DNA of 64,000 nt, taken from contig CDRNST010000011.1 in NCBI GenBank assembly GCA_977016875.1, positions 1,798,001-1,862,000 of the forward strand, written 5' to 3'. Shown one piece after another: positions 29,401-64,000 of the stretch; positions within the stretch are counted from its first letter, which is position 1, and every line of letters starts with the position of its first letter. Below the pieces are notes generated by a model that was given only the letters and a program-made list of their open reading frames with translations, was not told the DNA's origin and searched no databases. Made by a program: the position numbers and the translations under genes. The DNA comes from Pavona decussata (lineage: Eukaryota).

Positions 29401-30338
29401 TCCTGCTGCCAGCAGACTAGAAGGGCAAGTTATTAAACACAAATCGGGGTTTTTGCTGATCCAGGAAGCCACAACTTTCAGAAGGGACAATGGAGGCAGG
29501 TGTGAGTTGGCTGATAATTTGTCGCCTGGAATAGGAAATTTATCAGAGATAACTATTTTAACCTCTAGCTTTGTTATGGTAACCTTCATAAAATATTAGA
29601 GCGGTTTTCAATTGAGTGTCGAAAGTAATTCGCGTTTGCTTTCGTTTTGCTTTACTGTGCTCTGTGATTGGTTGCTAAGCTCGCGCCACTTTTTCAACCA
29701 ATGAGAAGTAAAAGTAACCCAATCGTGCCTCGCTCGTACGCGTTTTCTCGCGCTTGGTGCCGGTTATATGTATTTGCTTCGAATTCTGATTGGTTCATTG
29801 CGTTATTTACGTCTGTTGTGATTGGTCAGAGTAATTACTTTGGTTGTGGTTTTGGTTTTACGACACTCGATTGAAAAGCTCTATACTTGCCAAACAAATT
29901 CGAAGTTTAGACAGAAAGACTGACAATGAGAAAAAGATTTCACAAGCATTCAACACCATTACCGTGTCTTTCTCAAGTGCAGTGACGAGTGGTTGGTGTT
30001 ACGTGAGACTAGATGGTCGATTAACACGTGACAAAATGTCACGCCATAAGACAGGAAGGTCGTAGTCACATTTGACAAGCATTTGGTGCTGGCTAACGAA
30101 AGCCTCATTGATTATTTGTTATTGACGGTTTATAGAGTGTTTTCACATGACTTCACGACGGCCATGTTGGTGTCCCAAAACAAAGAAATGGCGGCCATGT
30201 TGGTGTCCCAAACTAAACCTCTGGGAATTTAATTCTATTTTTATGCAAATACTTTCTTTTGTTTCAGTAAACCAATATGGCCGGTAGTCACGTGAATCAG
30301 AAAACGCTCTATTAACTCCATCGCTATGTTTACTCCTG

Positions 30339-39483: not shown

Positions 39484-40439
39484 GAACTGAAAAAAAAATT
39501 AACCGCACCATAAAATCCTTTTAAATGCTTCAATTTATCACGGCACCAAACTGGTAGCCATAAGAAGCCAAATGTTTAGCTTGTAGTTTATTATCTGTCC
39601 ATCTATGTTTTGTTGTCTTAAAAAATGACAGACCAATTGGTCTTGTTCTAAAAATGTGCAGAAAACATCAACAGTGGTAGAATCCTTTGCCAAAGACCAT
39701 GGGGGGTGGGGGAGGGACGCTTCCCATAATGGACTACCCGGTAAGCCTCCGTCCCAAAGGGGTACTTTTTCGGACTGGAGGTAGATACAAGGTTAGCGAT
39801 TCCACGAACCGAAGTAGACAAAAATGGTAGAGAAAACTGTCATTTACGTGGTGAAGAGGGCTTTTCAAAATATCTCGCACAGACCCAAGAAAAAAAAATG
39901 CAGCGTTTCACTGTGAAAGGGTTTCAATTTTTTGGAAGGTATTTCAAAGGGCTACCTTTTCTGTCAAAAATGGAACATAAAAGGGTAAGGGTTTGGACCT
40001 CGGGGCGGAGCCTCCCCGTACAAAACTTCGTTGAGCGCCCCACCAGGGGCCAAAGACAAAGCCGTGTCGTATGACTAAGAACGCCCACAGCAACTTTAAT
40101 CTATACGAAGGCCCCGTGTAAAGGTCAACCTTCCATTGCATTCTGTCAGTGTCCTCGCGGTCCTTGACTGTGTGCCAAACCATGACAGATGAAGGCTGTA
40201 GACTAAAAGACCACATTTAACACGAGATCGTTTGTAAATGTACTCTAGAGGATATTTAAGTCTTCGGAAGTCTTGTCTCATAAGTTATCAAGAACCATGG
40301 ATAGGAAAACCTTGCCGTCGCCACAGAGAAATCCCATATATCGTGCGATAGAGAGGTACAAAAGCCCTGGCAAAAGATAAGAATGAACACAGGGGATTGA
40401 AAAGACATAAAAAAGTAAACTGGATGACAAACAAAGTTG

Positions 40440-40892
40440 AAAAGGAAAACGTAAGGCGCAGCAGGAAAATACAGGAAAAGAGAAAAAAAGAAAGGAGAAG
40501 GGAAGAGAAGGGAGGAGATGAGAGAAGAGAAGAAGAGATGAGAGGACAGGGAAAAGAGGGAGAATGGGGAAGGGAGCGGAGGGGAGAGGGAAAAGGCAGG
40601 GTACAGAAAAGTAGGACAGAGAGGATGAGAGCAGAGTAGAATAAAAGAGAAGAGGTGTAGGAGATGAGAGAAAGGGAGAACGGCAGGGTAAAGGACGACA
40701 GAGAGGAGCAGAAGAGAGGAGAGGAGAGGAGAGGCTCTTCATTTTGTGAACTGGCGAGTGCGGAGTCCGCAAAAGATTCTGTGACACCTAAGATGAGGAG
40801 AACAGAGGAGGGGAGAGAAGAGAAAAGGAAAGGTGAGTAGAACAGCCGAGCAGAGAACAGCAGAGGAGAGATGGCGAGAGTAGAGGAGAGAA
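40440..40892. repeat. GA-rich polypurine low-complexity tract
   Basis: Degenerate agagg/agaag pentamers; plus strand almost entirely purine. Confidence 0.85.
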
Positions 40893-43691
40893 ATTTTTGT
40901 ATAAAATTATATTTTCTCACGTGTCTGAAGGGTCCTGCTTCTCCAAGAGTGGCAGTTCCTTTACGTGCAACTGAAAACAGAGCACCTGAGCTTCATAATG
41001 GAGTTGAATGAGCTCGCTAAGTTCCTAGGAGAAACAGCAACAACAAACTCAAACAATTACTATTAATGGTAACTACAGTTAAAACAATGAGTATGAGGGT
41101 CTAAAGAAAACCATAGTTAATAAAAGGCAATGGTTATGAAGTCTGACAAATTTCTTTGTTATATGTTTTTGTTAGCATTTTTGGCCTTGACAGTGCACTG
41201 ACGACAATAGATTTTGAAATGTATTGGAGCAATTGACCAATAGAAAAGTTCGTGTTAAGATATTCAACTGTAGTACGACCATTAAAACAAAGGATTGTGC
41301 ACTGCCGTGGCCCTTCCAACATAAATTGCAGCACCATTGTTTTCATGACAAAGTTTCATAACCAGTCCCTCAATTAACTATGAGAAAACGGAACGCTTGA
41401 CCGATTTTCGGCTACGACTCTAGTTGACTGAAAATTTTTATACTCTTTGTGCTTTTTCCTTGTACTTAACTCTCTTTCTATGATCACCTTCACATACAAA
41501 CACTACAAGTGTAATTTTTGAAAAACCAATGCAAATTCAACGCATTTTGAAATTGTACTGACAACAATTGAAATTGGCCAAGAAAAGACCCCCCCCCCCC
41601 CCCCAGTCCCTGTTTTCACCTATCCCCTTGTTTGGAGGAAGGCCTCTGTAGAGCTCCCACCCACATCGGTCCTCCCGCGTAAGAGAGCCCTTTATTGAAT
41701 TCTGTGTGTTGAACAAGGCATAGCCTCGTTTGTTACACCATCAGAATAACTGAATTTATAGCGAAAAGCAATTAAATCCAATCTCGGGGACTTCCAGAAT
41801 TCTTTTACTCAAGGCGAAGATTGAAGTGCTTTTCAGGCAGGGGCTTAAACACTGGGTTGAAGAAACTTTTTCCTGTGCAAAGTGTGAGCGATGCGACCCG
41901 ATGGAATTATTGGGCCGGGTCTAATTCGCATGCGCATATTTCGTGTATTTCTTTCGTCGCGAGAAATATCGACGACTTCAACAAAAGAGTTAGGCTTACA
42001 CTGCGAACGTCGACAGATTTCCGGCAGTTGTTTCTTTTGTTGTTTTTCACCGCAGAAAAAGTTTTGACCATTTATGATATTTTAAAAAATAGCTTTGTAT
42101 TTCCTCTTTTCTATTGACATTCACAGCGTGATAAAGGCTTTGCGTTTATGAAGAACAAAGCATGATGATGCCAGAAACCAATCACAGCAAATTAAAGGAA
42201 CCGCTATCATTTCCTGGCGTGTTACCTCCAAAAAGTCAAATACGTTTCTTGTACGAGCCTGCCAGGCTGGAAAAACAAACTTGACATTTTTTCCAGCTAG
42301 AACCAGCGTTTTCATAAAAATATCCAGCTAGCCATTGATGTTCATGATCTCTTCTTCAATGAGGTCATCCAGTAAGGGGCCATATCAATCGTTTAAAATT
42401 TTCAAAAGGATTTTTAAGAATGTTTATAAAGAAGTTAAAAGGGAGGGGAAAAATCAATGAAATTGGAGGAAATGAAGAAAAGTTAAGATTTTAAGGTGAT
42501 TGAATTTTTAAAATTGAGGTTAATCATAATAGATGGACACCAAAACAGTCTGCTGACAACTAGAAGTGTTCTCTATTTTATTCAAGCTTTCTAAGTCACA
42601 CGCCAATGAAAACTTGATGACAAAAAACATTTCACCTTGCGTAGGCTAAATAAACTTTTTTTTCGTCCTGGCTCAACGGAGTACACAATCATACCTTTCG
42701 TTTTCTACTAACCTTGAGGGAACAGTAAGTGAAATCCGTTTCACCATACATCCGTCTGATATCCGGGCCTTCAACGATCCAGCTTTTTCGATTTCTTCAG
42801 GAAACCAACTGGATAGAAGCACACAGCCTTCCTTGCAAATGGCATCCTCCTGACCACTCAGGGAATCCCGAGGGTTTTCCTAATCAAACGAACTACCGGT
42901 TCCGCAAGGACAGACTTTCGAAAGTTTTTCCTCCGTTATGGGAAATAAAAACAGGAATGTTATTCAAGGATCAATATTTGCATATAAACACGCATCCCCA
43001 CAATCTTGGCGACTATAGAGGTCGTTTTTAAATCAAAAACTCGCCCCAGAGATACTTTTTGCAATAATTGTGACAATAAGGAAGTGAAGATTTTCAAGCC
43101 TATTATAGTTTAGGTTTGCATAATTTCCTTCCTGTAAACACCGCATCACACTATTTTTAGCGGCTGTGAGACAACTAGCTGATCGAAGTTAGTATTCCTT
43201 AATTACAGTACTGTAAAGCCGTCAAAATTTCTTTATTTTGCGACTGATACAAACTGTAGGTTACTTTGTAAGTTTGTGAGTGCTTCATTTTAAGAGATTT
43301 TATTCTTTCTTCGCAAACAAAGCACATGATAAGTTTGGCCAGCTTCTGCGTGCGAAAAAAAAAACGAGCTGTTTTCGCAGTTGAATTATGATCGCGACGC
43401 AGGAAATCGAAAAGAAAAGCAGTTGTTGCAGACTATTTATATAATACTCATATACCAAAATAAACGAATTTCTCGCTGATCATAAAAATGAATCAATTTT
43501 CCCGACCCTCAAACTTACTATGCCGACGCACAAACCAAACAGTAAAACACTGAAACTGATAAAAAACGACCAAGTTTGGCCAAATTGATAGGAAAAAAAA
43601 TTCAAAATATCATCAGCTCATATAAGGAATTTAAATATATCATTTGATGATATATTTAGATCAAAAATGCGTCTGCTTCCTCGGTAACCGC

Positions 43692-44132: not shown

Positions 44133-45902
44133 ATGGCAGAAAATCTGTTCACAGAACCAACTACAAGCCCTTATTGCTGGGAAATAATGCAAACCCTCGA
44201 TAAATCCCGAAAAGAAAAAGCATTGTCTGACGTAACATTGGACGTGGAAGGTCGAACGTTCGCGGCTCATCGATGTATCTTGGCGGCGAGCAGCAAGTTT
44301 TTTGATGGCTTGTTTACAAATGACATGGCAGAGAAATCGGCGCCAGTGGTGAAGCTCGAAGGGCTTCCAGCTTCAGTTATGGATAAGCTTTTATCTTACC
44401 TTTATACTGGTGAGATTCAAGTCAGCGAAGCAAACGCTGAAAACCTCATCGCTGCTGCCAATTATTTGCTTCTTCCTCGACTCAAAAACATCGCTTGTAA
44501 GTTTCTTGAACAACACATGTCCCCGTCAAATTGTATTTTCAGCTACCTATTCGCCGAGAGGTACGAATGCAAAGATTTGCAAAGTTACGCTGGGCAATTA
44601 ATCAAGCAGAACTTCGGAACAGTAGGAAAGTCGAAGGAATTTTTGCTTCTCTCGTTCGATCACGTAAAGGATTTAATTTCAAGAGATGATATTGTGATCA
44701 CCGCCGAAGAAGACATCTTTGAAGTAATTCTGAAGTGGATCGACGAAAATCGAGAGGAAAGGGAACATTATTTTGCTGAGCTATTTCGTCACGTTCGACT
44801 GAACACCATCTCCCAACACTATTTGTACACAAAGCTGGCATGTAATGACCTAGTACAGGGGAATGAAGAGTGCAGGCAAATACTGATGGACGAAATGCGT
44901 TGGCGTGCCTTGTTTGCAGGGCAGGAAATCTCACCACAGAGGTCCAGAGCCTGCCTCCAGAAACACGAAGATGCCGTCATTACATGTGGGGGGCTGTCTC
45001 CTGATGGACTCATTCGCAATCTTGCCCTCTGTTATGTACCAGCTCAGAAAACGTGGTACCAGTTGGCACCCATGCTTTCCAGGCGTTGTCGCCATGGTTT
45101 TGCTGCCTGTCAGGGATTTGTTTATGCCATTGGTGGCAAAGGAGAGGATTCCTTTCATTCCAGTGTTGAGCGATATGACCCTTGCACTAACACGTGGAAC
45201 TATGTGGCACCCTTAACAAAGAAAGTCAAACTGATTGGAACAGCCACCTTACAGGGGTTGCTCTACATTGTGGGTGGTATTGAATTTACCACTGAGCAGG
45301 GGCGAAGACGCTGCGACACAGTACAGAGGTATGACCCCGCAACAAATTCTTGGACTCTGGCAGCTTCACTCAGCAGTCGTCGCTCTTCTGTTTGTCTTGT
45401 AGCTGACGCACATTATTTGTACTCCATTGGTGGGCTTGGTGATGATGATTTCTTATCATGTAATGAACGTTATGACCCCAAGTTAAACATCTGGACAAAG
45501 ATGGCTCCAATGACTGAGAAACGTGGATGTGCTTGTGGAGTGTGTCTCAGCAAGAAGATATACATATTTGGAGGTACTGTTGATGCATTTTCCCGGCATG
45601 CCAGTGTCAGTGGTGAGGTTTATGACATTACCTTGAATGAGTGGCATGCAATTGCATCTATGCATGTTCCTAGATTCCATGCAAGTGCAGTCCTTCTGCG
45701 CGATCAGATATTTGTGTTTGGTGGCATTGGCAGTGAGAGTGTTGACAACACCAATTCTCGAGTGGTGGAGTGTTATGACGTGCAAACAAACCAGTGGGTG
45801 GCAGCTCATTCCATGCCTTACGAGGAGACTTACTTTAGAGGGTGTTCAGTAAACATGTTCAAAGGATTACTTCAGTCATTAAACAAAGTTCCATTAAATT
45901 AG
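44133..45902 (+). CDS. Kelch-like protein (BTB-BACK-6x Kelch), probable Cullin-3 adaptor, intronless CDS
   Basis: SDVTLDVEGRTFAAHRCILAASSKFF (BTB), AEEDIFEVILKWI (BACK), repeated GG...VERYDP...W Kelch motifs; first ATG at 44133. Confidence 0.95.
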   Translation: MAENLFTEPTTSPYCWEIMQTLDKSRKEKALSDVTLDVEGRTFAAHRCILAASSKFFDGLFTNDMAEKSAPVVKLEGLPASVMDKLLSYLYTGEIQVSEANAENLIAAANYLLLPRLKNIACKFLEQHMSPSNCIFSYLFAERYECKDLQSYAGQLIKQNFGTVGKSKEFLLLSFDHVKDLISRDDIVITAEEDIFEVILKWIDENREEREHYFAELFRHVRLNTISQHYLYTKLACNDLVQGNEECRQILMDEMRWRALFAGQEISPQRSRACLQKHEDAVITCGGLSPDGLIRNLALCYVPAQKTWYQLAPMLSRRCRHGFAACQGFVYAIGGKGEDSFHSSVERYDPCTNTWNYVAPLTKKVKLIGTATLQGLLYIVGGIEFTTEQGRRRCDTVQRYDPATNSWTLAASLSSRRSSVCLVADAHYLYSIGGLGDDDFLSCNERYDPKLNIWTKMAPMTEKRGCACGVCLSKKIYIFGGTVDAFSRHASVSGEVYDITLNEWHAIASMHVPRFHASAVLLRDQIFVFGGIGSESVDNTNSRVVECYDVQTNQWVAAHSMPYEETYFRGCSVNMFKGLLQSLNKVPLN

Positions 45903-51179: not shown

Positions 51180-51358
51180 CTTAAGAAGCAGGCTTTTAAA
51201 GCATCGTGGTATTGCAAAACAGAAAAGAAGACAAAGTGATCCAAAACTTAAATTCTCTGTACATTTTGCTGGTGATCGGAAGAAGTGTAGAGCCGTACGG
51301 CGCACCGAAATGAACTCCACGGAACTACAAGCGAGGGAACCACAATTGTGCCCCGAGT

Positions 51359-51392
51359 CAACCTCGTTCCCAAGTCCCTGGGAACGAGGTTG
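51359..51392. mobile_element. 34-bp minimal MITE with perfect 9-bp TSD
   Basis: gccccgagt|caacctcgttccca...tgggaacgaggttg|gccccgagt. Confidence 0.8.
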
Positions 51393-51515
51393 GCCCCGAG
51401 TCGCCTCTTGGCTCAATCGCTTTACTATCCCTAAAAAAAAAAGAAGGGACTGCTCGTGATCTAGAACTATACAAGAGCGGTACTTAAGTACGGCGGTATT
51501 GAGAATACTATCACA

Positions 51516-51960
51516 AGTAGTATGGGTCGAATGGATAGATCAATTTTATTCATGTATTCAAATAGATTCAGGGGTCACCTAAACCGGTTTTAAGCGTTGA
51601 ATGAGTTGACATGACATGTGGTAGATATAGGGGAAGGGTTTAATGAGATGCAAGCCATCCAGGTGGAAGAGGGGTTTAATGAGATGCAAGTGTGGATAGA
51701 AAATGGAGATTGTTGTTTATTAGTCAAGTGTACTGTGTTCTGGTAGTACGTTTCCGCCCAACCAGCCGGGTGGTATAGGAAATATATAGGGAAAGAAACA
51801 ATGGATAAGTTGAGAACCAATGAGAAACCACTCACGTCATGGTCAAACAAGTTGAATCTAGAAAAACCAGACTAAACCAGTTTTGAACACAATTAAGTAT
51901 TCAAATGACCTCCTTAATATCTCAGACTAGACAAACCTGTCAAACCGGTTTTTTTTTTCA
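51516..51960. repeat. Probable terminal inverted repeat region of the Polinton
   Basis: Begins AGTAGTA; non-coding; internal direct repeats gggtttaatgagatgcaag x2 and aaacc(a/g)g motifs; partner end lies outside the window, so the length is a guess. Confidence 0.55.
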
Positions 51961-52086
51961 CTGTTCAAAGTAGCAGCACCCAAAAACGGACACGAGACAA
52001 TATTTTGTATGAACACCATTAATTTTATTGAATAAACATGATCAATTATTACAAACACTTTCCAAAGAGAATGATGGTTCTGAATT

Positions 52087-52557
52087 TTACATGAAATCAG
52101 TTACTTTATCGATTCTGGCAAATTGTCTCTGAAACTTGGGTCTTTGCAGCTGTTTCCCATATGTTGTCGTCATGTCCACCTCAGTTTCTCTTGGTTTGTA
52201 CACCGGAGACTCCCTTTGAGAATATGCGTCCACAAGCATTTCATCACCCCATTGAAAGTGTCTACACATTTCCTTTCTTCTACATGTAAAGTAAGGCCTG
52301 AACGGATTCTTTGCTGATCTTGACACCCTTAACGTGGGCGTGTCCATGTGCTTGCATAGTAGCGGCTTACCACCTTCACATACTTTGTACTCAGGGATCA
52401 CACGGTCGCACACGCATTGTTGATAGCCATGGATACTCTCTTCAGGGCAGAAGAACGGACACTCTTTCCAATTTGAACACCGAATGTAGGCTATACCAGA
52501 GGCGGGTTTGATCACTTCGAGGTCTTGGAGGCAGAGTCCACATTTTGAGTAACTCAT
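52087..52557 (-). CDS. Viral zinc-ribbon plus GRF-type zinc-finger protein
   Basis: CKH...VSRSAKNPFRPYFTC....CRHFQWGDE fits zf-GRF; N-terminal CGLC...CSNWKECPFF. Confidence 0.75.
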   Translation of the reverse strand: MSYSKCGLCLQDLEVIKPASGIAYIRCSNWKECPFFCPEESIHGYQQCVCDRVIPEYKVCEGGKPLLCKHMDTPTLRVSRSAKNPFRPYFTCRRKEMCRHFQWGDEMLVDAYSQRESPVYKPRETEVDMTTTYGKQLQRPKFQRQFARIDKVTDFM

Positions 52558-52672
52558 CTTGGAAGTGTTTCTTGGGAGCAGTCAGTTGAAAGTGATGTGT
52601 GATGGTCAAAGTCACGGTCACTTTATACAGTTTTTAAAAACCGGTTCTTTCAAATATCACAAAACCAGTTTA

Positions 52673-53059
52673 CTACCTGTCAGTCTCATCAATGTCGTTA
52701 ACGATCAAGTCTAACCAGTACCAACAGGTTTTGCAAAACTGGTCACGTTGCAGAAGCACTTTCTCAATGTGTTTCCGCTCTTCATGTCGTTGTGTGTTAT
52801 CGATCCAGTCTTGTTCGTACGGCGCCACTGCATCCAACACATCTAATAAATCGTGCCACAACCAATAAACATCGCTGCGATATTTATCCAAAGCTGCTTC
52901 CTTCAAACATGACGTCACGTTTTGATGATCATGCAATGAAAGCGGTTCCTTTTTAAAAATGTCCTCATACACTAAGAACGCAAAACAGATCCAGTACGCT
53001 TCCTTTATTCTCTCCTCGTCACAAGAGTTGCTTTTATTGTCAACGATGTTTGGTGCCAT
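52673..53059 (-). CDS. Viral hypothetical protein (128 aa, acidic, Trp/Cys-rich)
   Basis: ORF with an upstream TATA box, co-oriented with the element genes. Confidence 0.7.
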   Translation of the reverse strand: MAPNIVDNKSNSCDEERIKEAYWICFAFLVYEDIFKKEPLSLHDHQNVTSCLKEAALDKYRSDVYWLWHDLLDVLDAVAPYEQDWIDNTQRHEERKHIEKVLLQRDQFCKTCWYWLDLIVNDIDETDR

Positions 53060-53136
53060 GATCTGGACTCAATAACCATAGTAAGCATGTCCTTCTGTTT
53101 TATATCTTTCCCTTTAGGTAAACAGGTTTTTCCAGT

Positions 53137-53667
53137 TTAGTACGGTTCCCATTGTGCATTGCTTCGTAATCTTGCGACCAAGGGTGTTCTTGCCTTATAA
53201 CGACGTTTTCCTGTTTTACGCCTAGAAGGTGGTGGTGTATCCATCATGAGTGCATGCGCTGATTCTTCAGTTGAAACGGAAGGCGGTGTTTCGGTTCGGA
53301 TGGGAATTTTTGACCCTTTAGTACTGAGAGGAGTACCCCTCAATGGTTTAGAGACTTTGGTAGATTTTGTCTCTGGTTTGGGGGTAGACTCCTTAGCAGG
53401 TAATGGCTCTGACTTTGGCATCACCACTGTTGGTTTCACTGTCGCTTCAGTTTTCATCTGTTTTGTCAACCCTTGATACCTTTGCAAAAGTTGATCCAAC
53501 AATAGCACTTTTTGATCTTCAGGTAAAGACGAGTCCATGATCTGTTTCATGTCTTGATCTAAACGTGTCAAAGTGGGAAGCTGAGCTGGTGCAGTCAACC
53601 GGTGTTCTGTTTCCATACTTTGCAATAAATGTTCAGGTACCATCACCATCTTTTGCGCGTGCTTCAT
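53137..53667 (-). CDS. Polinton hypothetical protein (MKHAQKMVMVP..., Pro/Ser/Thr/Lys-rich tail)
   Basis: 176-aa ORF with an ATGA overlap with the upstream gene. Confidence 0.75.
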   Translation of the reverse strand: MKHAQKMVMVPEHLLQSMETEHRLTAPAQLPTLTRLDQDMKQIMDSSLPEDQKVLLLDQLLQRYQGLTKQMKTEATVKPTVVMPKSEPLPAKESTPKPETKSTKVSKPLRGTPLSTKGSKIPIRTETPPSVSTEESAHALMMDTPPPSRRKTGKRRYKARTPLVARLRSNAQWEPY

Positions 53668-54128
53668 TTGAACACTTTTCCTAACAACTCGGTAGCAAGA
53701 GGAGCAATCAAACTAGCAAGGGCAGACAAGAATCCTCCCTTTTGATTCAACACTGCCTTTTTCCGCTTAAGACTTGGTTTCTTGCGAGTCAAAAAGAGGA
53801 GCTTTGACTTGTGTGGCTTCAACCGTTTAAATGATGAATTCGGTATTACCATGTTGCCTTTAAGGAGATTTAGAGCAATTTCACCAATGGCCTCCATTTG
53901 CCCTTTGTTCGCATGTGCTATCATGTCTTTCCGTTGTTTTCCATTACTCTTGAAACAAGTACAAAGAAAGGGTAAATGTTGTTGGACTCTTGACTGTTTG
54001 GATACTCTCACGCGATTTCTATTAACCCCTTTAGATCGGGTGGTGGTACCAGAGCGTAACGCCATACTGCCACCACGTTGATTTTTTCTTATCCCTTTTG
54101 TTGTGCGACGTGACCTGCAGGACGTCAT
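53664..54128 (-). CDS. Basic virion core protein, adenovirus pX-like
   Basis: Very Arg/Lys-rich; QRGG and QKGG-FLSALASLIAPLA resemble the protease site plus hydrophobic tail of pX. Confidence 0.7.
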   Translation of the reverse strand: MTSCRSRRTTKGIRKNQRGGSMALRSGTTTRSKGVNRNRVRVSKQSRVQQHLPFLCTCFKSNGKQRKDMIAHANKGQMEAIGEIALNLLKGNMVIPNSSFKRLKPHKSKLLFLTRKKPSLKRKKAVLNQKGGFLSALASLIAPLATELLGKVFK

Positions 54129-54132
54129 CACG

Positions 54133-54810
54133 TTAACTGAAATCCACCCGTAGTGGTTCCTCTGTTTTATGACATTTCTTGTCTACGTAAATCACGGGAT
54201 AAGAATGTGACGTTGGCAATATCCTTGTCCGTAACCGTTGAATATTTTGTGTACGAGGATGTAAGTCCAAGACAAGATAACCGAATGGGTGTGACGTCGC
54301 ATCTTGGAAGCTCTCCCATACGTAAGGTACATTTCCTGCGAATGCCTGCTGAGCCAATGTTCGAAAACCCAGCGTATCGCGAGGGTTGTTAAAAGCAATG
54401 ATGTAGTGGGCATTCAGAGAGATACTCCGCGAAAACTTTCCAGGTGGAAAAAGGTTCTGGGTCAAATAAATGCAGGTTACATCACAGTGATGAGACACCT
54501 TAGTAAACAGATCGAGAATACGTTCGTCATCGCTGCAATTTCGCATTAAGTCATCCAGTACGAGTATTCCAGGTCGGCAGTTTGCTGGAAATAAACTAGG
54601 AATATCTTCGGGAATACCCTCAACAAATGTCACTTGAGCTGTCATGTTCCTAAAACATTCTTGCCATTGTCCATAGCAATACACAATTTTACGAATAGGC
54701 CTTTCAAATAAAGAATCCGCTTGTTCAAGTAACTGTTTTGTAAACGTCGTCTTTCCACACTGACTTGGCCCTGCTATCATAATACTGCTTGGACATTTGA
54801 ATTGGGACAT
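54133..54810 (-). CDS. FtsK/A32-family DNA packaging ATPase
   Basis: Walker A GPSQCGKT, Walker B ILVLDD, YLTQNLF and ISLNAHY motifs; likely ATG at 54810 (ORF open from 54903). Confidence 0.95.
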   Translation of the reverse strand: MSQFKCPSSIMIAGPSQCGKTTFTKQLLEQADSLFERPIRKIVYCYGQWQECFRNMTAQVTFVEGIPEDIPSLFPANCRPGILVLDDLMRNCSDDERILDLFTKVSHHCDVTCIYLTQNLFPPGKFSRSISLNAHYIIAFNNPRDTLGFRTLAQQAFAGNVPYVWESFQDATSHPFGYLVLDLHPRTQNIQRLRTRILPTSHSYPVIYVDKKCHKTEEPLRVDFS

Positions 54811-54925
54811 CTTCTCGCAATGAAAAGCAGCAACGTTATGATAACTTGTTGATCGATGTTCCTTTTTAAAGTGATATATCAAAGACACGGACACATCATT
54901 CATTTTAACATCAACAAAACTTTAT

Positions 54926-55456
54926 TTATTGATTACACCAACATTTGAAAGATTTACAAGCTTGCTCCTCAAATTGTGAGACATTTTCATTCCTAACATT
55001 CGTTAACGACTGAATGTAGGTGTGTACAAATTGCGCTACTTGTGAATCGTTCCATTGTGTATCATATCGCAGAAATTTATTTTGAATAGTGTTTAAATCC
55101 ACATTTCGTGCACGATGAAGTAAGTAAAACAGGCAATAGTCTCCACACACATCTGAGGTTAAGCCTTGCATCGGTTTGTCATTGTAATATGTTGTTTCCC
55201 TCAGTACGTATCCATCCATACCATAGCTCTCAGGAGGAAATCCATAGCTGTCAAAGAATTCGCTTTCTTGAGGCGATACAAAGTACATCGCAATCCAATG
55301 CGTTCCAGGTTGATTATGAGGATCTGTATTTGCAATCATTGCTGAAGGATACGTTTCGACGATTGGTAACTTGTCACTTGGAAATACTCCTTTCATGATA
55401 GGTGCTAGGACAGGATCGTGTATTGAGGCTTGCCATAATTCTTGAGTTGTATGCAT
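54926..55456 (-). CDS. Adenain-like (clan CE) maturation cysteine protease
   Basis: NTDP...GTHWIAMY, EFFDSYG and MQ.....CGDYC give the catalytic H/D/Q/C residues. Confidence 0.95.
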   Translation of the reverse strand: MHTTQELWQASIHDPVLAPIMKGVFPSDKLPIVETYPSAMIANTDPHNQPGTHWIAMYFVSPQESEFFDSYGFPPESYGMDGYVLRETTYYNDKPMQGLTSDVCGDYCLFYLLHRARNVDLNTIQNKFLRYDTQWNDSQVAQFVHTYIQSLTNVRNENVSQFEEQACKSFKCWCNQ

Positions 55457-55458
55457 CT

Positions 55459-56787
55459 TCAAGCACCTTGAGACAGATCGTATACCACGCGTCTATTGCG
55501 GTCAACCTCCAAATGATTTTGGAATTCTGCGTATACGATTAAATTTAAAACCTCTGGTGTCGGCACTCCAAATTTCAGATACAAATTGACGTTACCGCTG
55601 CGATGGGGAATCAGGTGGTCCGGGTGGCCACTACCCGCAGGAGTGGTATCCAAGCGGAATAAGCCGTATCCACCTTCCCAATCCTCTCTGTCAATATCAA
55701 TACCATGGCCACAGTTCATATCGCCACTGCCTGAGAAGAGTGTATTGTACCCATCAATTCTCTTTCCACCTGTCAAATCTATCACTGAATAAGGGATTTC
55801 TTCACCATTGACCGTCAGTCGTACTGCATTCACGTCAAACAGCTGAAAATTGAAAGGATTTCTTGCCAAGCTACCATTGTAGGCATCATTTCGTACCATT
55901 CCAAATATGATGCATTGAGGAATAAGTCCGTTGAAAAGATCCGTCTCGGTATGATTCAGCACACCCCTGGGGATAATCCTCGCGTGTGTTGGCGTCCTTG
56001 TCAGCGTGTAGATAGCAGGTAGGGCTTTTTGTCCTGACCGTCCTTGCATGATACTAACATGCTCTAGTTTGGTACTGTCAGCTACGCGTACTGTGCGGAC
56101 TCTGAGAGTGCTTGACATTATGCTTATCTTGCAATCATTGGCCTCTTCTCCACTCATGAGAACAAATTCATCGCTGTTTAGATCAATCTTGATTTTGATT
56201 TCTATGTTGTCCAGCAGCAGCTTATTGGTGTTGAACAGATCACACAGGGGTACTCCAACCAATCCTACCTCAGCACCAGCATTGGTAAATACACCCCTCT
56301 TCTTGAGTCCCCAGTTATTGTCAGAAGTGTTATCTACTACATCCATATGTCCTGCTGTGTCTTTGTAGTACAATGCTTTGGTTAGGTAAGATTTCTTTGC
56401 CTGTTCAGTAAAATTAAGCAAGGTCTTGATGTAGGCATTGTACGCCTGCGTGTCAGACTGTTCTGTGACAAGTGTTTCGTTCAACTTGATGGTAAACTGT
56501 TTGATGAGCGAATGAAGCGCGTTGTTGATCAACGTATATTTCTTTCCACCTCCTGTATCCCCGCCATTTCGTTTGGTAATCTTCACCACCAATCGCAGTT
56601 CTGTTTTGTTGATGTCAATGTAATCAGATAGAGGCTTGATGACAAACTCGATAGGGTTGGTTCCACTTTGAACTGGTTCATAATCCACCCATTTACTTTT
56701 GAGAATGGAGACATCCGTGACCGGTACTTGAAATAACTGTAAGCTCGAATTTTCACCGGGGGCAGAGAGAGGGTGAGCTGAGGCCAT
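55459..56787 (-). CDS. Major capsid protein (double jelly-roll, hexon-like/PY)
   Basis: 442 aa, beta-rich; NNALHSLIKQ, LIPQCIIFGMV...NPFNFQ and IVYAEF motifs typical of Polinton MCPs; located between core and protease genes. Confidence 0.9.
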   Translation of the reverse strand: MASAHPLSAPGENSSLQLFQVPVTDVSILKSKWVDYEPVQSGTNPIEFVIKPLSDYIDINKTELRLVVKITKRNGGDTGGGKKYTLINNALHSLIKQFTIKLNETLVTEQSDTQAYNAYIKTLLNFTEQAKKSYLTKALYYKDTAGHMDVVDNTSDNNWGLKKRGVFTNAGAEVGLVGVPLCDLFNTNKLLLDNIEIKIKIDLNSDEFVLMSGEEANDCKISIMSSTLRVRTVRVADSTKLEHVSIMQGRSGQKALPAIYTLTRTPTHARIIPRGVLNHTETDLFNGLIPQCIIFGMVRNDAYNGSLARNPFNFQLFDVNAVRLTVNGEEIPYSVIDLTGGKRIDGYNTLFSGSGDMNCGHGIDIDREDWEGGYGLFRLDTTPAGSGHPDHLIPHRSGNVNLYLKFGVPTPEVLNLIVYAEFQNHLEVDRNRRVVYDLSQGA

Positions 56788-56789
56788 CT

Positions 56790-57248
56790 TTAGTCGAAAA
56801 TGGTCTTGAACTTTGAAGGTGATGTTCTCCGTTTCTTGGTCTGTCTTGAACTGGCAGGAGTCGCCTTTCGTTTGCGCTTAAGTAGTCTCCCCCCACGACC
56901 TTGTTGCGTAAGGTCCTGGAAAGCACCCGTCAGAAACTGTTTACCGGCAGTCTTTGCCCTCGCTTTCGCTGCTTTCTTTAAAGACTGACCATTGATGACA
57001 TCTTTTGCAATTTGCATTCCTGTATCCACTCCTGTATTGAGTAAACGTTTTCCTACTTTCTTGGCAGCTGTCTTGAGAAAGGGTGTGGCTGTACGGAAGA
57101 GGGAACGAAACATTCCTCCTAATCCATTACCTCCTTGACCATAAGGACGTGTCCCTCCAAAGACACTTATGTCTCCTTTCCCTCGTTGGAAAAAGGGGAT
57201 GACTTGTTGTTGGTAAGGGTAAAATTGATGATTCATAGGTAGAAACAT
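56790..57248 (-). CDS. Basic core or membrane-lytic protein (pVI/pX-like)
   Basis: QGGNG followed by the amphipathic helix LGGMFRSLFRTATPFLK; C-terminal NLS-like KRKRK...KKRR. Confidence 0.7.
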   Translation of the reverse strand: MFLPMNHQFYPYQQQVIPFFQRGKGDISVFGGTRPYGQGGNGLGGMFRSLFRTATPFLKTAAKKVGKRLLNTGVDTGMQIAKDVINGQSLKKAAKARAKTAGKQFLTGAFQDLTQQGRGGRLLKRKRKATPASSRQTKKRRTSPSKFKTIFD

Positions 57249-57249
57249 A

Positions 57250-58131
57250 TTAGAGAATTGCACGACGCCGAAAATGAAGTGTTACTCGTACAGTGCCAAA
57301 CGCAAATGGTACCAGATGGCCAGTGTCACTTCTTATATTGATCTCCACGGAAGAAAATACAGATGTACGGAGTCGATAATAAGTAGGAGTCTTTATTTCC
57401 TCTGCCACCATCTCCCCAGGTTGACCACGAGGTACTATGGTTCGAAGGATATTCGCTTGTACATCCCCCACTACAAGGGACTCTATTAGGTCAGAGTAGA
57501 TGTACATCGTCTGAAATGAATGTCTGCTTAACATACCCCAGACCAATTCATCGTCTCGTCGCACAGTGGTCGTAGTAGCGGTAAGTGTCACACTCTGATT
57601 CTTATTCAGTTGGACAACGGTGGGAAGACTGATCTGATAAAGAGCCGGTACCCGATCATGATGGTTCAAGTATCCTAATGCCCGAGCTAAATTCTTGGGC
57701 AACGTTACTTGAAATGTTGGAGGTAAATTGAATTCGTAGTAATGTTGAGCTTTGGAGTAAATGTAGAAGCAGTCACTTCCACCGATGCGCTTGATCCTTT
57801 TTCCACTTTTCAGATAAATATCTGGAAATGCACTCTGGAGTCCTGTCACCATACCTTTGACCAAGTCATCAACTGTTCGATAAATGCCACTTGGTAGATA
57901 GATGGGTAGGGTCCATGGTGAATCGCTGTTACAGCTTAACTGGTAAGACAGTTGCTGACTTTGCACATTTTTCCAAGTATGTGGGTAAATGATGTGTGTC
58001 ATTGCCACTTCCCAGTCTTCACTTAAGTGCTGCTGATTTAGAAGTTGCATCTTAAACTTGGCAGGTTTGTTTTCAGGGTACTGAGCTGTGCTTGCGTCAC
58101 TGGTTACAACGATGTAAAAACTGTTACTCAT
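57250..58131 (-). CDS. Minor capsid protein (penton-like), copy 2
   Basis: FYIVVTSD..YPEN..F, WEVAM..IIYP, MYIYSDLIE..VGD, VTLHFRRR. Confidence 0.88.
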   Translation of the reverse strand: MSNSFYIVVTSDASTAQYPENKPAKFKMQLLNQQHLSEDWEVAMTHIIYPHTWKNVQSQQLSYQLSCNSDSPWTLPIYLPSGIYRTVDDLVKGMVTGLQSAFPDIYLKSGKRIKRIGGSDCFYIYSKAQHYYEFNLPPTFQVTLPKNLARALGYLNHHDRVPALYQISLPTVVQLNKNQSVTLTATTTTVRRDDELVWGMLSRHSFQTMYIYSDLIESLVVGDVQANILRTIVPRGQPGEMVAEEIKTPTYYRLRTSVFSSVEINIRSDTGHLVPFAFGTVRVTLHFRRRAIL

Positions 58132-58982
58132 CTTGTACGCCGTCTAAAGTGAAGTGTCACGTTTACGATACCACCTTGGAATGAAAGCAGCTTTCCACAA
58201 CCACTTGTTAAGTAGATTTCAACGGTCTGAAATGTTTTGGTTCGTAAAGGAAAATAACTGATGTGCGTCGCTTCTTCCATTAACGTGTCGCGAAATCTAC
58301 CGTGTGGTACCATTTCATATAGCAAATGCAACTGTTTTTCACCCACTTGATGTGGCTCTATGAGATTGGTTTGCACTTGCACTACTCTGTGTGTGCAGTG
58401 ACATAAAGAAACGGTGAATGGTATTAAGAATGTCCCGGGAAATGTGAATGAGTAACGAAGCGGTAACGCGCACCATTCATAACCATAAGTAGGAATCTGT
58501 CCAAGGGTAGAATAGATCTTCAATGCAAACATGGTGCTTTCTCGGACTTTGTTTTCTTGGGTTATCCAACCAAGAGCTTGAGCCACAGGCTTGGCCACGA
58601 ACATCCATTCCTCTTGAGTTGTAAAGGTAATGTTCCATTCATCATCAACGGCAATGTGAAGGCTTTGTCTTTGCACGCATTGCAGTATGCCTTCTATCAC
58701 GTCCAGTGCTGAACGATATCTTCCCACAGGTAGAGTTATCCTCTTTACTTCTTGGGCACCAGATCGTCGGAGCATGAAATGTGGATGATTGCATTCATGG
58801 GGAACTTCAAACCACGAGAATGGGTAGATTACATTATGAAGTCCAACTTCCCAATCCTCTTCATCTTTTAACCGGATTTGTCGAGGTAACGCTACACGAT
58901 AGTATGACGTTGAGTTGGTTGGGAACAAATTCGTATTGGCATTGCTAGGAAGCATCACATAAAAATCATCATCTTGAATCAT
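58128..58982 (-). CDS. Minor capsid protein (penton-like), copy 1
   Basis: FYVMLPSN..FPTN..Y, WEVGL..VIYP, TNLIE..QVGE, VTLHFRRR. Confidence 0.85.
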   Translation of the reverse strand: MIQDDDFYVMLPSNANTNLFPTNSTSYYRVALPRQIRLKDEEDWEVGLHNVIYPFSWFEVPHECNHPHFMLRRSGAQEVKRITLPVGRYRSALDVIEGILQCVQRQSLHIAVDDEWNITFTTQEEWMFVAKPVAQALGWITQENKVRESTMFALKIYSTLGQIPTYGYEWCALPLRYSFTFPGTFLIPFTVSLCHCTHRVVQVQTNLIEPHQVGEKQLHLLYEMVPHGRFRDTLMEEATHISYFPLRTKTFQTVEIYLTSGCGKLLSFQGGIVNVTLHFRRRTR

Positions 58983-60106
58983 TTTTGCTGCAGAGAAACC
59001 AACTGTTTATATGGAATCCAACTGTCGTATTTCTCTGGCCAACCTTTCCAATGTACCAACACTTCTTTGTTGACGCCTTTTCCTCGACGTTTTAAAATTT
59101 TCTCAATGCGAAACAGATGATCTGAACTTTCTGTCACTTTCTGTAACTCAGCCTCGTAAAATGTTCCTCTAATCAGCTCACCGTCTGCCTCCTTCAAACG
59201 ATACACGGGTGGGTTTCGTGGCAGTCTCTGGGCGACCGTAAATGATTCCTCTGTCCAAGAAGGAAGATATCCTTTCTGAAAGACACGTTTGTACTTACCG
59301 ATCTTGACTTGGTCTCCCACCTTGAATTTATATTTTATGATCGAGGCCTGTTTACCATACAAGGTTCTCCATACGTCTTGAGCATTAAAAACTGTCACTT
59401 CTGCAGGTTTCATTTTTATACTACGATGTATGCTCTGATTGTAGTTCTCATTCACCAAATTGTCTAACTTGTCCAGGTAATGATATGAGCTGCTCATAGT
59501 AAATAACCGCCATAGAAGATGTTTCAAGGTCCTGTTGAATCGTTCAACTACTTGCGCCTTCGTCTCGTTGTATGTGACAAAATGACGAACATCATGATTC
59601 TTGAGAAATGTTTGAAAGCTACGGTTCATGAATTCCGTCCCTGCATCTGTCTGCAACCTTTCCGGTTTACGTCCTTTCTTAAATATGCTTGTAAAGGCCG
59701 CTACCAAAGCCGAAGCAGACTTAGATTTCAATGGCACCACCCATGCATACTTGGATAGGACATCAATGCAAGTTAACAAGTATTTGTGACCGCGATTCCA
59801 CCGACTCAAATTCTGAAGATCTGCCAGATCCGCTTGCCACTGTTCATCCAAACCGTTGACAAATACTCTATTGCGACGAAAGCGTTTTCTTGCTGGTTTG
59901 TGGAGAGTGTAGCCAGGTTGTTGCTGTAACCACTGAACAACTTGCAAGCGGGTTAGTCCATACTGACGTGCGGCTCGATACAACTTTTGTACACCACCTA
60001 ATGCGGATGAGCGATCAAATTCATAATACAGTTTCTCTAGTAAACGATTCGTGTGAATGGTGGTATTCTTCTTCTTCGTTCCCCTCTTCGTGTTCTTCTG
60101 TCGCAT
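58979..60106 (-). CDS. Retroviral-type DDE integrase with C-terminal chromodomain
   Basis: WQADLAD, LQTDAGTEF and VERFNRTLK catalytic motifs; IEKILKRR...VLVHWKGWPEKYDSWIP chromodomain. Confidence 0.97.
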   Translation of the reverse strand: MRQKNTKRGTKKKNTTIHTNRLLEKLYYEFDRSSALGGVQKLYRAARQYGLTRLQVVQWLQQQPGYTLHKPARKRFRRNRVFVNGLDEQWQADLADLQNLSRWNRGHKYLLTCIDVLSKYAWVVPLKSKSASALVAAFTSIFKKGRKPERLQTDAGTEFMNRSFQTFLKNHDVRHFVTYNETKAQVVERFNRTLKHLLWRLFTMSSSYHYLDKLDNLVNENYNQSIHRSIKMKPAEVTVFNAQDVWRTLYGKQASIIKYKFKVGDQVKIGKYKRVFQKGYLPSWTEESFTVAQRLPRNPPVYRLKEADGELIRGTFYEAELQKVTESSDHLFRIEKILKRRGKGVNKEVLVHWKGWPEKYDSWIPYKQLVSLQQK

Positions 60107-60175
60107 CTCTTAAATCGATGTGTACTTGACCACCGCAACATGCAACTAAACAGCGCATCCTCTGACATATATCAT

Positions 60176-60577
60176 TTAAAGCCAGGGTAGGAGTTGAACT
60201 TGCACAAAGACGACTTGTAGCACTGCCCATGGTTGTCTTACGAATGACCAATGTAACTTGTTAAGTACGCCTTTTATCCTTTTCCATAACATTAGCCAAG
60301 GAGCCTTTATTATTTGTCGAATCATCCACCAGGGAGTAGGATAATGCGATGAATATGTGTCACATAACATTAGATGAAATGCATATTGTTCTCTCAGAGG
60401 TGCGTTGCTTCGAGCCATATAAGCATAAAAGCCCAGCAGCCTACCCCAGTGCATGGCTCCTATTTCTTTCAAAACATCCAACCAATGGTGAGAGGAAACG
60501 ATTGGCAAAGAGGTACGATGTACAAGTGTTTGAGCGCAGCCACGCACCAGGAAAAAATACAGTCTGTTCATGTTCAC
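60176..60577 (-). CDS. Putative viral Bcl-2-like protein
   Basis: VLKEIGAMHWGRLLGFYAY resembles BH1 (NWGRIVAFF); hydrophobic/amphipathic C-terminus; TATAA ~45 bp upstream. Confidence 0.5.
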   Translation of the reverse strand: MNMNRLYFFLVRGCAQTLVHRTSLPIVSSHHWLDVLKEIGAMHWGRLLGFYAYMARSNAPLREQYAFHLMLCDTYSSHYPTPWWMIRQIIKAPWLMLWKRIKGVLNKLHWSFVRQPWAVLQVVFVQVQLLPWL

Positions 60578-60688
60578 TGTTCAATGTGTAATGAGTTGTA
60601 GATGGCCTCCAAACCTCCCCTTATAGCCATCCCTATCCTCCACAGCGTCACCATTTCAGATTGCAGGCTCCAGTATGGAACGGTAAAG

Positions 60689-63600
60689 TCAGCGGTAACC
60701 ATATGGCAATGTTGTGAAACCGTGAATAACTCGTTTGTCATACACCAGTTTGTACCTCTTCTTTAAGTTAACTGTATGTATTGTTTTCGTTTTTGCATCT
60801 CGTTTGATGAAGTGTGGATTCTCCAGGAAGGTGGGCTGTTCATTAGGGTTGCAGACATGTGCACACATGGTTAAAAAATTCAATTTCTGTGATCCTCTGA
60901 AGTTTAGCGTGAATCCTCTCACTTTGCATGTAGTTTTACCATTCTTGGTTTGGTAGGCATAATTCTTTGGACCACCGGACACAAAGGTTGTGATGTAGTC
61001 ATCATCGTCCAGTTCATTCGTTAGCTCTCCAAGATAATCCCCAAGGGCTGGCATCCAATCATCTGGTTGGCTAGTGAAGATGACAGAATCTGTGTCAAAG
61101 TAAAGGACCCTTGTTTGTAGACGTTCAAGGACAGAATAGAGTTTGAGTCTTGCATGGGCTGTCGTGAAAGCAGCAATGACAACATTCGTCTTGTGTGATC
61201 CTGATACGAACCCTTCCCCATGCGTGTAGTAGACTTCTACGCACTCATCATTCACAAACTGAATGTTTTTCACTTGAGTTGACTGGCATGTGAGGAGTCG
61301 AAAGTAGCGTTCTGGATCCTTGACGAGCTCCACTTGAGGCATGTTGTCACGTTCACCAAATTTCCCCCCTTGAAAGAAGAATAACAACCATAATTAGTTT
61401 ATTGAAGCAAAGAAAAGTAATCAACATTATCATTTTGGAACTGTAAGAGATGATACTTACAAAACGAATTCAACATCAGCTTGGCCAATGAACGTAATCC
61501 AGGGTTCTTCTTAACCTTTCCATAGTCCAACTTGATGCCTTCTTTCCCTTCATAGTCTTCGATGTACTGTTGTTTTTGAGCTTCTGTTTCACACCAAGAA
61601 GGCCACCCACTCGCCTCTTGCTTGATTTTAAGGAAGGTATCGATGTATCCTGTAAAAAGCTCGGACGATTTCTGAGGGAAATGCCACACCTCTATCATTC
61701 TAACCACTCGGTATCCCAGCTCCAACGCTTTATCGATCTCAATGGAACACCAGGTTCCAGACAACATACGTTCTTCAACTGCATGTTCGCAGGCAGTCTG
61801 TTGTAGGCTCTCAGCACATGTTCTGCAGAGAGGGAACATCAGTTTTCCATTGGCACGGTAGGGCAACACAGGGTGGAACAGAAAGGTGGGTGGAAGGATG
61901 TCACACTTGATCAGCCCAAAGAACTCATGGGGTGAACGGTTCATTAAGGCTTCACTTGTTAAAATTTCAGGATGCTGGATCGGAATTTCGCAATACTTAC
62001 TTGTCCAGGGGTACAATGATGTAAAGTCCACGTAATGAATCTTCTCGTTCTCATTTACTTCCTTGTGGAGACAGATAGCATTTGTCCGTCCACCGAAAAA
62101 CGCATGCCGGGGCTCTAAGGGCGTGTCAAACTTGAGACTTTCAACAAATGATTTCATCTCTAGGTTGTTGGCTAGTTCTTGCTTGAATTCACATTCCCAT
62201 TTTACTTCTACTCGGAATCCAAGCTTCTTGAAACGCTCAACTTTTCGAATGGTACCTTCCAGGAGATCTTCCATACTTGTGTCGTTCACTGGGTTCACTG
62301 TGTCGGGTAGGTAACACTTACGACAACCATGCCACAGGCACCCCATGAATTCATAAATGATCTTCTTGGTGGGATCATAACCGTCAACATAGCTGTTATC
62401 GATCCGTTGTTCACCACCGTTCAGAGCATGCAGAATTCGGTCACCTGACTGATGGTGGATCCATGCCAACCACTGGAGGGCCATGACAGAATATTTTCGG
62501 GCGGGTTGGTAGCCCTGTGCAGGAATGAGACCAATGGTCTCTTTTTCTAGAAACTCTTGCCTGAACACACGGTTACAGGCACTTGCAATTGTAACACAGT
62601 ACTTGAATGGATCGAGGTTGCACGCTTCCTCCATTAACTGTTTAAACTGTAAACAACACCGTCTCAGAATGTCCACATCACTACGACAATATTCCTCGAT
62701 TTCTTTTTCAAAATCAAACACATATTCTGTGTTTCTCCGTTCTTCATACCACCTCAGGAATTCTTGACGCTCTTTCGTACTCATGCCATCTGGGTCGTAG
62801 TTTTCAATAGGCGGAAGAGGACCAACATACTGCTGATTTTCTTTGCGATTAAAAAAGTGAGGAAAGTAGCCTTTCTTAAGCTCTGTTAGGCCAAAGGTTT
62901 TTGGTAACGCTTTAAGTGGCATGGGGAGGAAATTGAGAGAGTCCCGGAACTTGATTTCAGCTTCTGTTAGTTCCATAGACATGATTTTTGCACCATTCAG
63001 GATCAGACTTGGAAGCAGGCATTGTTCGTAGAAATATTCACACAATAGATATCCATCGTACCCCCTTAGATTATGTGCAATGACGATAGCACCTTGGTGG
63101 GTTCCATCCAACAACCACGTGCCGAATTGGTCAACGCAATCATCCCCTTTAAAGACCATCTCAAACCCTGTTTCATCTTGCACGATGAGCAGATTGGCAA
63201 TATGTCTCCCCTCGTCTTGGCGTGATTCTATGTCAAAGAATAAATATTCCTGCTCTTCCTCTTCTTCTCTGTCTTCGTCTTCAACTTCATCGCTTATCAT
63301 CTCTTCAGAAATCCGTCTTCTCTTTGTTTGCCCTTTGTTCTTTTTCTTCCGCTTTGGCTGTGCTTCATTTCCTTCACCTGAATCTTCTTCTTCTTCTTGA
63401 TTGGCAATCGGTTTCATATAGCATCGGTGTGTATTTGGGTCTACAAACTCTTCACAATTCCAGCACATCTTTTCTCCACACATGTGATCTTCCGGCTTCC
63501 TTTTTTGATGCGACAAGACTTTGTTACATTTTTTACATTTGTAGAATTTTTGACAGACAGATTGGCCCTCTTTGTTGGGTCGGCAGTGGTTGGTATAACA

Positions 63601-64000
63601 TTCATCTCCAGCGAACATTCTGTGACAGGTTCCACACTCTCGCCAAGGTGCTTTCTGGGTAATCCCTTGACAACCATCTGTGAAGCAACATTTACATACT
63701 TTGTTGCAACGGTGTTTCGTTTTTGTATCGTAACCTTTCTTGCATTCCAAACACCAAAAGCCCCTTCCGAGAAAGCTAGAGACAGAGGTGATGACATCAA
63801 AGTGGTTTTCGTGGTGATATAGGTAAATTTGTTTTTCTCGGCGTGGTCCTTCGTAGACAATGGCGTTGAAATGTATGGCAGACAGAACGATGATTTGGTA
63901 GTCGTCAACCACTGCTTGGAATTTGGCCACTTCTGTTAACCCACAGAGACCCTCTGGGACACCAGCCTTTTGATGCAATCGTTGAGCGAGGAGCAGTTGC
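60689..64000 (-). CDS. Protein-primed family B DNA polymerase (pPolB); exons >64000-61461 and 61368-60689
   Basis: Exonuclease motifs FFDIE, AHNLRGYDG and YCRSDVDIL; polymerase motifs FFGGRT, YVDFTSLYP, KLMLNSF/WGKFG across a GT-AG intron, YFDTDS, PKNYAY and KVRGFTL; N-terminus lies beyond the window. Confidence 0.97.
61369..61460 (-). other. 92-nt GT-AG spliceosomal intron in pPolB
   Basis: Donor T|gtaagt, ctaat branch-like motif, ttcttctttcaag acceptor; removal restores TGG and the NSFWGKFG motif. Confidence 0.9.

Follow-up and report, generated by a model that had tools for sequence, protein, structure and literature searches.

Does the end of a 64,000-nucleotide (nt) stretch of contig CDRNST010000011.1 (positions 1,798,001 to 1,862,000 of assembly GCA_977016875.1, deposited as Pavona decussata; hereafter the window) carry an integrated virus, and if so, is that virus of a kind not described before? 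A preliminary description of this DNA, made from the letters alone, had proposed an apparently intact endogenous polintovirus at 51516-64000 and had raised the possibility of a new lineage. We find that this segment is very probably a copy of an adintovirus (animal Polinton/Maverick, class Polintoviricetes), integrated in a cnidarian genome of stony-coral type. This reading draws on the identities of its genes (Pfam matches, the predicted folds of a major capsid protein and a penton, and the paralogy of two pentons), on their compact arrangement, the host context, the coral affinity of the encoded proteins, membership in a multi-copy family, a shared polymerase intron and an AGTAGT terminus. 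As far as the window shows it, preservation of the copy is unusually good. The polymerase frame stays open to the window edge and the element is therefore cut there, so that all statements on the element cover the last 12.5 kb of the window only.

The visible part is densely coded. Fourteen open reading frames (ORFs), corresponding to 13 genes, are co-oriented on the minus strand and cover 96.4% of 52090-63999, in agreement with the earlier count of at least 12, and open stretches of at least 120 codons account for 97% of the element's minus strand vs 10-18% per strand elsewhere in the window. Neighbouring genes overlap by 4 nt at four junctions and by 14 nt at one, and the remaining gaps measure 1-115 nt; such tight junctions leave no room for nested insertions, and the claim that the element is free of nested miniature inverted-repeat transposable elements holds. 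A single interruption, in the polymerase gene, is the only internal stop or frame change among the visible genes, as anticipated by the statement that stops and frameshifts disappear once the polymerase is spliced, and the capsid and penton proteins have the same lengths as their relatives. No further Polinton pieces or repeats of element DNA are found elsewhere in the 64-kb window. The features that carry the identification are as follows.

51516..64000, minus strand: integrated adintovirus/Polinton copy, visible part; every gene is on the minus strand and the window end cuts the element
54133..54903, minus strand: P-loop ATPase, 256 amino acids (aa), candidate genome-packaging ATPase, from weak P-loop matches and Walker motifs
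54926..55462, minus strand: putative adenain-like cysteine protease (maturation protease), 176/178 aa, from a below-cut-off match to Pfam PF00770 and motif order
55459..56787, minus strand: double-jelly-roll (DJR) major capsid protein (MCP), 442 aa, from comparison of an AlphaFold2 model with the PDB
57250..58131, minus strand: penton protein of 'penton-2' type, 293 aa, from an AlphaFold2 model and 68% identity to a Rhodactis penton-2
58128..58982, minus strand: second penton, 284 aa, paralogue of the 293-aa penton, from which its fold is predicted
58979..60106, minus strand: retrovirus-type integrase with C-terminal chromodomain, 375 aa (Pfam rve PF00665, E = 8e-14; Chromo PF00385, E = 8e-8)
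60689..64000, minus strand: protein-primed family-B DNA polymerase (PolB) gene, one part (Pfam PF03175, E = 5e-43), frame interrupted once

The 442-aa protein is confirmed as a DJR MCP by its predicted fold. An AlphaFold2 model built from 41 of 200 homologues, all of the same length, has a predicted local distance difference test score (pLDDT) of 82 and a predicted template-modelling score (pTM) of 0.84, and its top 50 PDB matches are DJR capsid proteins only (E = 3e-16 to 5e-12, template-modelling score (TM) 0.53-0.63), with iridovirus, PBCV-1, mavirus, Sputnik and faustovirus represented. A sequence profile of the same family matches nothing among PDB sequences, and fold comparison alone worked. 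In BFVD the best match of the model (31% identity, E = 9e-33) is an uncharacterized protein recorded in Cotesia sesamiae Mombasa bracovirus, and next come adomavirus, giant-virus and virophage capsid proteins; a Maverick-type capsid gene is therefore present in this wasp bracovirus record.

The model of the 293-aa protein is of moderate quality (pLDDT 71.5, pTM 0.55), and its top 40 PDB matches are pentons only (mavirus at E = 4e-8, Sputnik, adenovirus penton base and PBCV-1), with TM values of only ~0.35. Its neighbour of 284 aa, which forms a cluster of 32 members, aligns with it by BLASTP over the full length at 27% identity (E = 2e-27), and this paralogy, taken with the penton-only matches of the 293-aa model, upholds the earlier proposal of two pentons.

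The other two capsid-module genes are identified less firmly. A PF00770 match at E = 7e-4 (19.7 bits vs a cut-off of 21.3) and the order His...Asp...Gln...Cys seen in the translation (THW, FFDSYG, QG..S..CGDYC) point weakly to an adenain-like maturation protease at 54926..55462, which belongs to a cluster of 36 members and finds nothing meaningful among PDB sequences. Similarly, matches to AAA_16, RNA_helicase and AAA_14 (E = 5e-4 to 3e-3, all below the Pfam cut-offs) and the motifs GPSQCGKT (Walker A) and ILVLDD (Walker B) weakly suggest that 54133..54903 encodes a candidate genome-packaging ATPase; it has a cluster of 69 members at ≥90% identity, and PDB and PHROGs searches with it are uninformative. 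In the hallmark set put forward by the preliminary description, the protein-primed polymerase, DDE integrase, DJR MCP and penton therefore stand, whereas the adenain and the packaging ATPase are backed weakly, by sub-cut-off Pfam matches and motifs. The broader proposal of an endogenous Polinton/adintovirus with a virion module finds support in the MCP and penton folds, the penton paralogy and the Pfam matches of the polymerase, the integrase and a GRF zinc-ribbon protein.

Both the rve and Chromo matches of the integrase lie above their respective Pfam cut-offs. The polymerase has 16,599 relatives, the best representative being 47% identical over 861 aligned residues, and the window edge cuts off its N-terminal portion, which spans ~335 residues in the closest representative. 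Searches with each of the two parts of the interrupted polymerase frame show that they are adjacent in relatives, a single residue apart. The extra DNA that separates them here is ~95 nt long with a GC content of 0.28, vs 0.44-0.45 in the coding flanks, and contains one GT...AG pair that holds both frames in register. Among 150 divergent representatives, 122 cross the junction, 12 terminate no more than 30 residues from the boundary and only 9 terminate elsewhere. Of the 39 members that cluster with the downstream part at ≥90% identity, at least 9, on different contigs, have this part as a separate ORF that begins at the same start. An NCBI eukaryotic gene model from Montipora foliosa, XP_068703990.1, is 84.5% identical to part one and 92.9% identical to part two, and omits the same read-through tail and head as at the junction in the window. 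Tandem duplication as the cause of the frame change is ruled out, with no DNA or peptide self-similarity above that of shuffles, and the resemblance that the read-through tail seems to bear to four relatives is short and was selected post hoc.

The interruption is thus best read, at the level of sequence, as a putative short intron that is called by a gene predictor in a close relative and is common to relatives; contiguous parts in relatives, an AT-rich GT...AG stretch, the Montipora gene model and sharing among copies all favour the spliced polymerase that had been proposed for this locus. Vertebrate Mavericks judged intact are reported to lack introns (PMC8097293), which makes the conserved polymerase intron the most unusual feature that we found, and the literature that we searched does not mention any cnidarian element with an intron in its polymerase. 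At about 63450-63750 on the minus strand, upstream of the PF03175 match, the polymerase carries five CxxC motifs within ~100 residues, a stretch that has no Pfam domain here or in the closest full-length relative and that suggests a zinc-binding module.

The named relatives of the MCP and the penton are cnidarian. The MCP is 81% identical to its counterpart in Montipora, 76-77% in Acropora and 72% in Nematostella, and the 293-aa penton is 70% identical to a Porites protein and 68% identical over its full length to a protein recorded as 'penton-2 [Rhodactis coral adintovirus]'. Taken with the Montipora polymerase model, these relatives make an acroporid host, related to Montipora, probable. Clusters of the element's proteins at ≥90% identity have 9-72 members on many contigs, many of which are fragments. 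We conclude that the family is multi-copy, represented in public assemblies by dozens of copies at ≥90% identity, and that the present copy is among the better preserved.

Judged by gene content, with activities taken from established families, such an element would replicate by its own protein-primed polymerase and insert by means of its chromodomain-bearing retroviral-type integrase. The capsid module that it carries comprises a DJR MCP and two diverged pentons, along with a candidate P-loop ATPase for packaging, a putative adenain-like protease for maturation and several small proteins of basic character. Expression of the polymerase, whose gene appears to hold one short spliceosomal-type intron common to close and distant relatives, would need nuclear splicing.

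The presumed left end of the element begins with AGTAGT at 51516-51521, the terminal motif reported for vertebrate Mavericks (PMC8097293), with ATCACA as the 6 nt immediately outside, and is followed by a non-coding region.

51516..52086, no strand: terminal non-coding region, 571 nt, GC 0.37, presumed terminal inverted repeat

The partner of this presumed terminal inverted repeat would lie beyond the window, inside which no inverted partner is found. The region contains two direct repeats of 22 nt (51633-51654 and 51669-51690, 95% identical, 36 nt apart) and an 86-codon ORF with a TTG start (51590-51850) that matches nothing and is unlikely to be a gene. Outside the element end, at 51351-51402, lies a perfect 12-nt hairpin stem (AACCTCGTTCCC / GGGAACGAGGTT) with an 8-nt loop, flanked by the direct repeat CCCCGAGTC; this could represent a small repeat element or a relic of an RNA gene. 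A contig of a second assembly matches the window across the host-element junction over 13.4 kb at 99.98% identity, without a mismatch and with 2 small gaps; the final 186 nt of the sequence compared belong to the non-coding end of the element and are identical to the window. An insertion-free allele was sought through a look-up of the host gene, which returned the same locus only, with the element end present.

The remaining visible genes encode accessory and small proteins.

52087..52557, minus strand: GRF zinc-ribbon protein, accessory, 156 aa (Pfam PF06839)
52673..53059, minus strand: acidic, Trp-rich protein, 128 aa, isoelectric point (pI) 4.7, with no Pfam, PHROGs or PDB match
53137..53667, minus strand: 176-aa protein with helical N-terminal part and basic, Pro/Ser/Thr/Lys-rich C-terminal part, candidate virion core/cement protein
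53664..54131, minus strand: very basic protein, 155 aa, pI 12.0, 23% Lys+Arg, hydrophobic C-terminal tail, candidate DNA-condensing/core protein
56790..57263, minus strand: basic (pI 11.7), Gly-rich, amphipathic protein, 157 aa, start codon uncertain, candidate membrane-active/core virion protein
60176..60577, minus strand: basic, Trp-rich protein, 131/133 aa, between polymerase and integrase, likely the gene called 'Bcl-2-like' in the preliminary description

The GRF assignment stands by a narrow margin, with PF06839 matching residues 67-106 at E = 6.3e-6 and 26.6 bits vs a gathering cut-off of 25.9; the protein has an additional Cys-rich N-terminal stretch, belongs to a cluster of 9 members at ≥90% identity, mostly of 156 aa, and has no match among PDB sequences. 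No link between GRF zinc ribbons and Polintons is found in the literature searched. The Bcl-2-like label, on the other hand, finds no support at the sequence level. Neither PF00452 nor any other Pfam family matches any of nine members of the 131/133-aa family at E up to 10, and a profile of the family gives 0 matches to PDB sequences at E up to 10, cellular Bcl-2 and Bcl-xL included; only a short Trp-Gly-Arg stretch, with ~40 residues ahead of it, resembles BH1. The ORF is nonetheless probably a real gene, which has a cluster of 22 members, only 8 close relatives (66-98% identity) and a conserved core of ~50 residues.

Small membrane-active and core proteins are recognized classes in adintoviruses (PMC8502044, PMC11071296), and by analogy we infer only that the three small basic proteins here (pI 10.0-12.0) could fit them (PMC8502044), the 155-aa protein being a candidate DNA-condensing or core protein of the adenovirus pVII/pX sort. 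A PHROGs scan of ten element proteins gives zero matches, and Pfam searches at E up to 10 with the unassigned ORFs of the element return noise only. A scan for bacterial promoters and terminators finds fewer sites than in shuffles and is irrelevant to a eukaryotic element.

Host genes adjoin the element. Two large exons of INTS15 (Integrator subunit 15, PF14964) lie at 28942-29595 and 35126-35635, both on the minus strand. On the plus strand, 44133-45902 holds a BTB-BACK-Kelch gene with a single exon that encodes 589 aa. These neighbours identify the contig as metazoan. Intra-window repeats are confined to 1-28 kb, with none in 32-64 kb, so that the repeat-rich host region described earlier is found in the former, but not in the latter, where ordinary host genes adjoin the element. 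Most of these 17.4 kb of repeats are the units of a plus-strand tandem array at 558-24124, in which four paralogous ORFs of ~480-550 aa, without a Pfam family, are spaced 6-8 kb apart and share 70-83% mutual identity; a run of N at 18188-18438 falls within it.

558-2174; 8149-9300 plus 9212-9832; 16408-17856; 22478-24124, plus strand: tandem-array ORFs, one copy split into two overlapping ORFs

The 40-42 kb stretch looks like low-complexity or repeat sequence, with three overlapping open frames of 160-234 codons (40259-40992 on the minus strand), an AT skew of 0.19 and a GC skew of 0.15; the largest of these frames has no Pfam match.

Could the segment instead be a dead genomic fossil, in which the polymerase interruption is a disabling insertion and the other frames are open owing to young age? 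The frame is indeed interrupted, with a stop within 20 codons, most members of the family's clusters are truncated fragments, and intact vertebrate Mavericks have no introns (PMC8097293), but the same interruption recurs in many sister copies and divergent relatives, the stretch is AT-rich, bounded by GT...AG and leaves the flanking coding sequence exactly contiguous, the NCBI gene model of a Montipora copy splices it out and no tandem duplication is involved; we therefore regard a fossil as very unlikely. Less credible by far is an assembly artefact, in which a free viral genome or contaminant was joined to a coral contig. The source looks like a metagenome-style assembly, to judge from a contig name that carries a coverage tag; yet the same proteins occur on two separate ENA contigs (396,622 and 931,381 bp), the one compared here (396,622 bp) matches straight through the junction as described above, and sister copies lie on many large contigs, which together make an artefact extremely unlikely. 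Several points do weigh against an integrated adintovirus: the window does not reach the second terminus or target-site duplication, nor the N-terminus of the polymerase and whatever genes precede it; protease and ATPase are assigned from sub-threshold Pfam matches plus motifs; the penton model is moderate (pTM 0.55, TM to pentons ~0.35); splicing of the polymerase is predicted from sequence, one gene model and sharing among copies; and host affinity is judged by the relatives of the element's proteins, and such proteins are able to pass from one host to another.

A separate question is whether this adintovirus represents an undescribed lineage, defined, as had been suggested, by the combination of a spliced polymerase, two pentons, and Bcl-2-like and GRF proteins. 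The nearest named virus protein is just 68% identical, the literature searched contains neither a GRF-Polinton link nor a cnidarian polymerase intron, and the 131-aa and GRF genes are conserved among copies. However, a penton-2 is already annotated in a public coral adintovirus (68% identity), duplicate pentons are in print (PMC11071296), as are Bcl2 homologues and chromodomain integrases, the likeness to Bcl-2 has no sequence support, polintoviruses of Montipora and other stony corals have been catalogued in their thousands (PMC11131425), and close copies at ≥90% identity are public, some of them already NCBI gene models. A lineage so defined is unlikely, and that part of the earlier proposal is not sustained: the kind of element and its gene layout are already public, and this copy is a good example rather than a new sort of element. 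A narrower statement is possible, though we hold it only tentatively, namely that a cnidarian adintovirus lineage with a conserved spliceosomal intron in the catalytic part of its polymerase and with lineage-specific accessory genes (the GRF zinc-ribbon and Trp-rich 131-aa proteins) is undescribed in the literature searched. If true, polymerase expression in this lineage would be tied to nuclear splicing, which would distinguish it from vertebrate Mavericks, reported to lack introns, and would matter for the place and manner of expression of these elements.

Well-preserved integrated adintoviruses serve as reference points for asking whether animal Polintons still behave as viruses, and corals hold very many of them. 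This copy offers a clean example in which two diverged pentons occur together with a polymerase intron common to copies. The intron provides an inexpensive marker by which the lineage can be traced and its expression checked in RNA-seq data that already exist. The copy leaves the understanding of Polintons as it was.

Among known systems, the virophages mavirus and Sputnik provide the best structural matches for the penton (mavirus at E = 4e-8) and some of the best for the MCP, at ~9-13% sequence identity; virophages depend on giant viruses in protists, a lifestyle that nothing in this element suggests. Vertebrate Mavericks (Barreat and Katzourakis 2021, PMC8097293) have the core gene set and the AGTAGT motif in common with it, but their genes form two modules on opposite strands that converge on the centre and are free of introns, whereas here one strand carries all visible genes and an intron-like stretch interrupts the polymerase. 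In the adintoviruses of the Alpha-PolB class (Starrett et al. 2021, PMC8502044; Buck et al. 2024, PMC11071296), a PolB of PF03175 type and an integrase with a chromodomain occur together with adenain, an ATPase of FtsK/HerA type and the capsid proteins hexon and penton; some of these genomes have Bcl2/IAP homologues (PMC8502044) and some have duplicate pentons (PMC11071296). Unlike this class, the element has no visible N-terminal OTU-like domain in its PolB, which would be either outside the window or undetectable by Pfam, and no LxCxE 'Oncoid' motif in any ORF of the visible part; its GRF protein, in turn, goes unmentioned for adintoviruses in both papers (PMC8502044, PMC11071296).

Two further comparisons are with cnidarian elements. 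The Rhodactis coral adintovirus, a GenBank third-party assembly compared here by its penton-2 alone, encodes a 294-aa protein of that name that is 68% identical to the 293-aa penton, a level that indicates that the two are not the same species-level element; the naming itself implies that the same two-penton layout is probably present in a cnidarian adintovirus. In the literature searched, no paper names this Rhodactis record. The survey of stony-coral polintoviruses by Stephens, Faghihi and Moniruzzaman (2024, PMC11131425) makes no mention of introns, pentons by name, or zinc-finger or apoptosis-related accessory genes. It describes endogenous elements with PolB and an rve integrase, together with MCP, minor capsid protein, ATPase and protease, that are present in tens to thousands of copies across Scleractinia, three Montipora species included, with hallmark genes transcribed in Stylophora (PMC11131425), and by this set of PolB, integrase and capsid genes they are of the same kind as the element described here.

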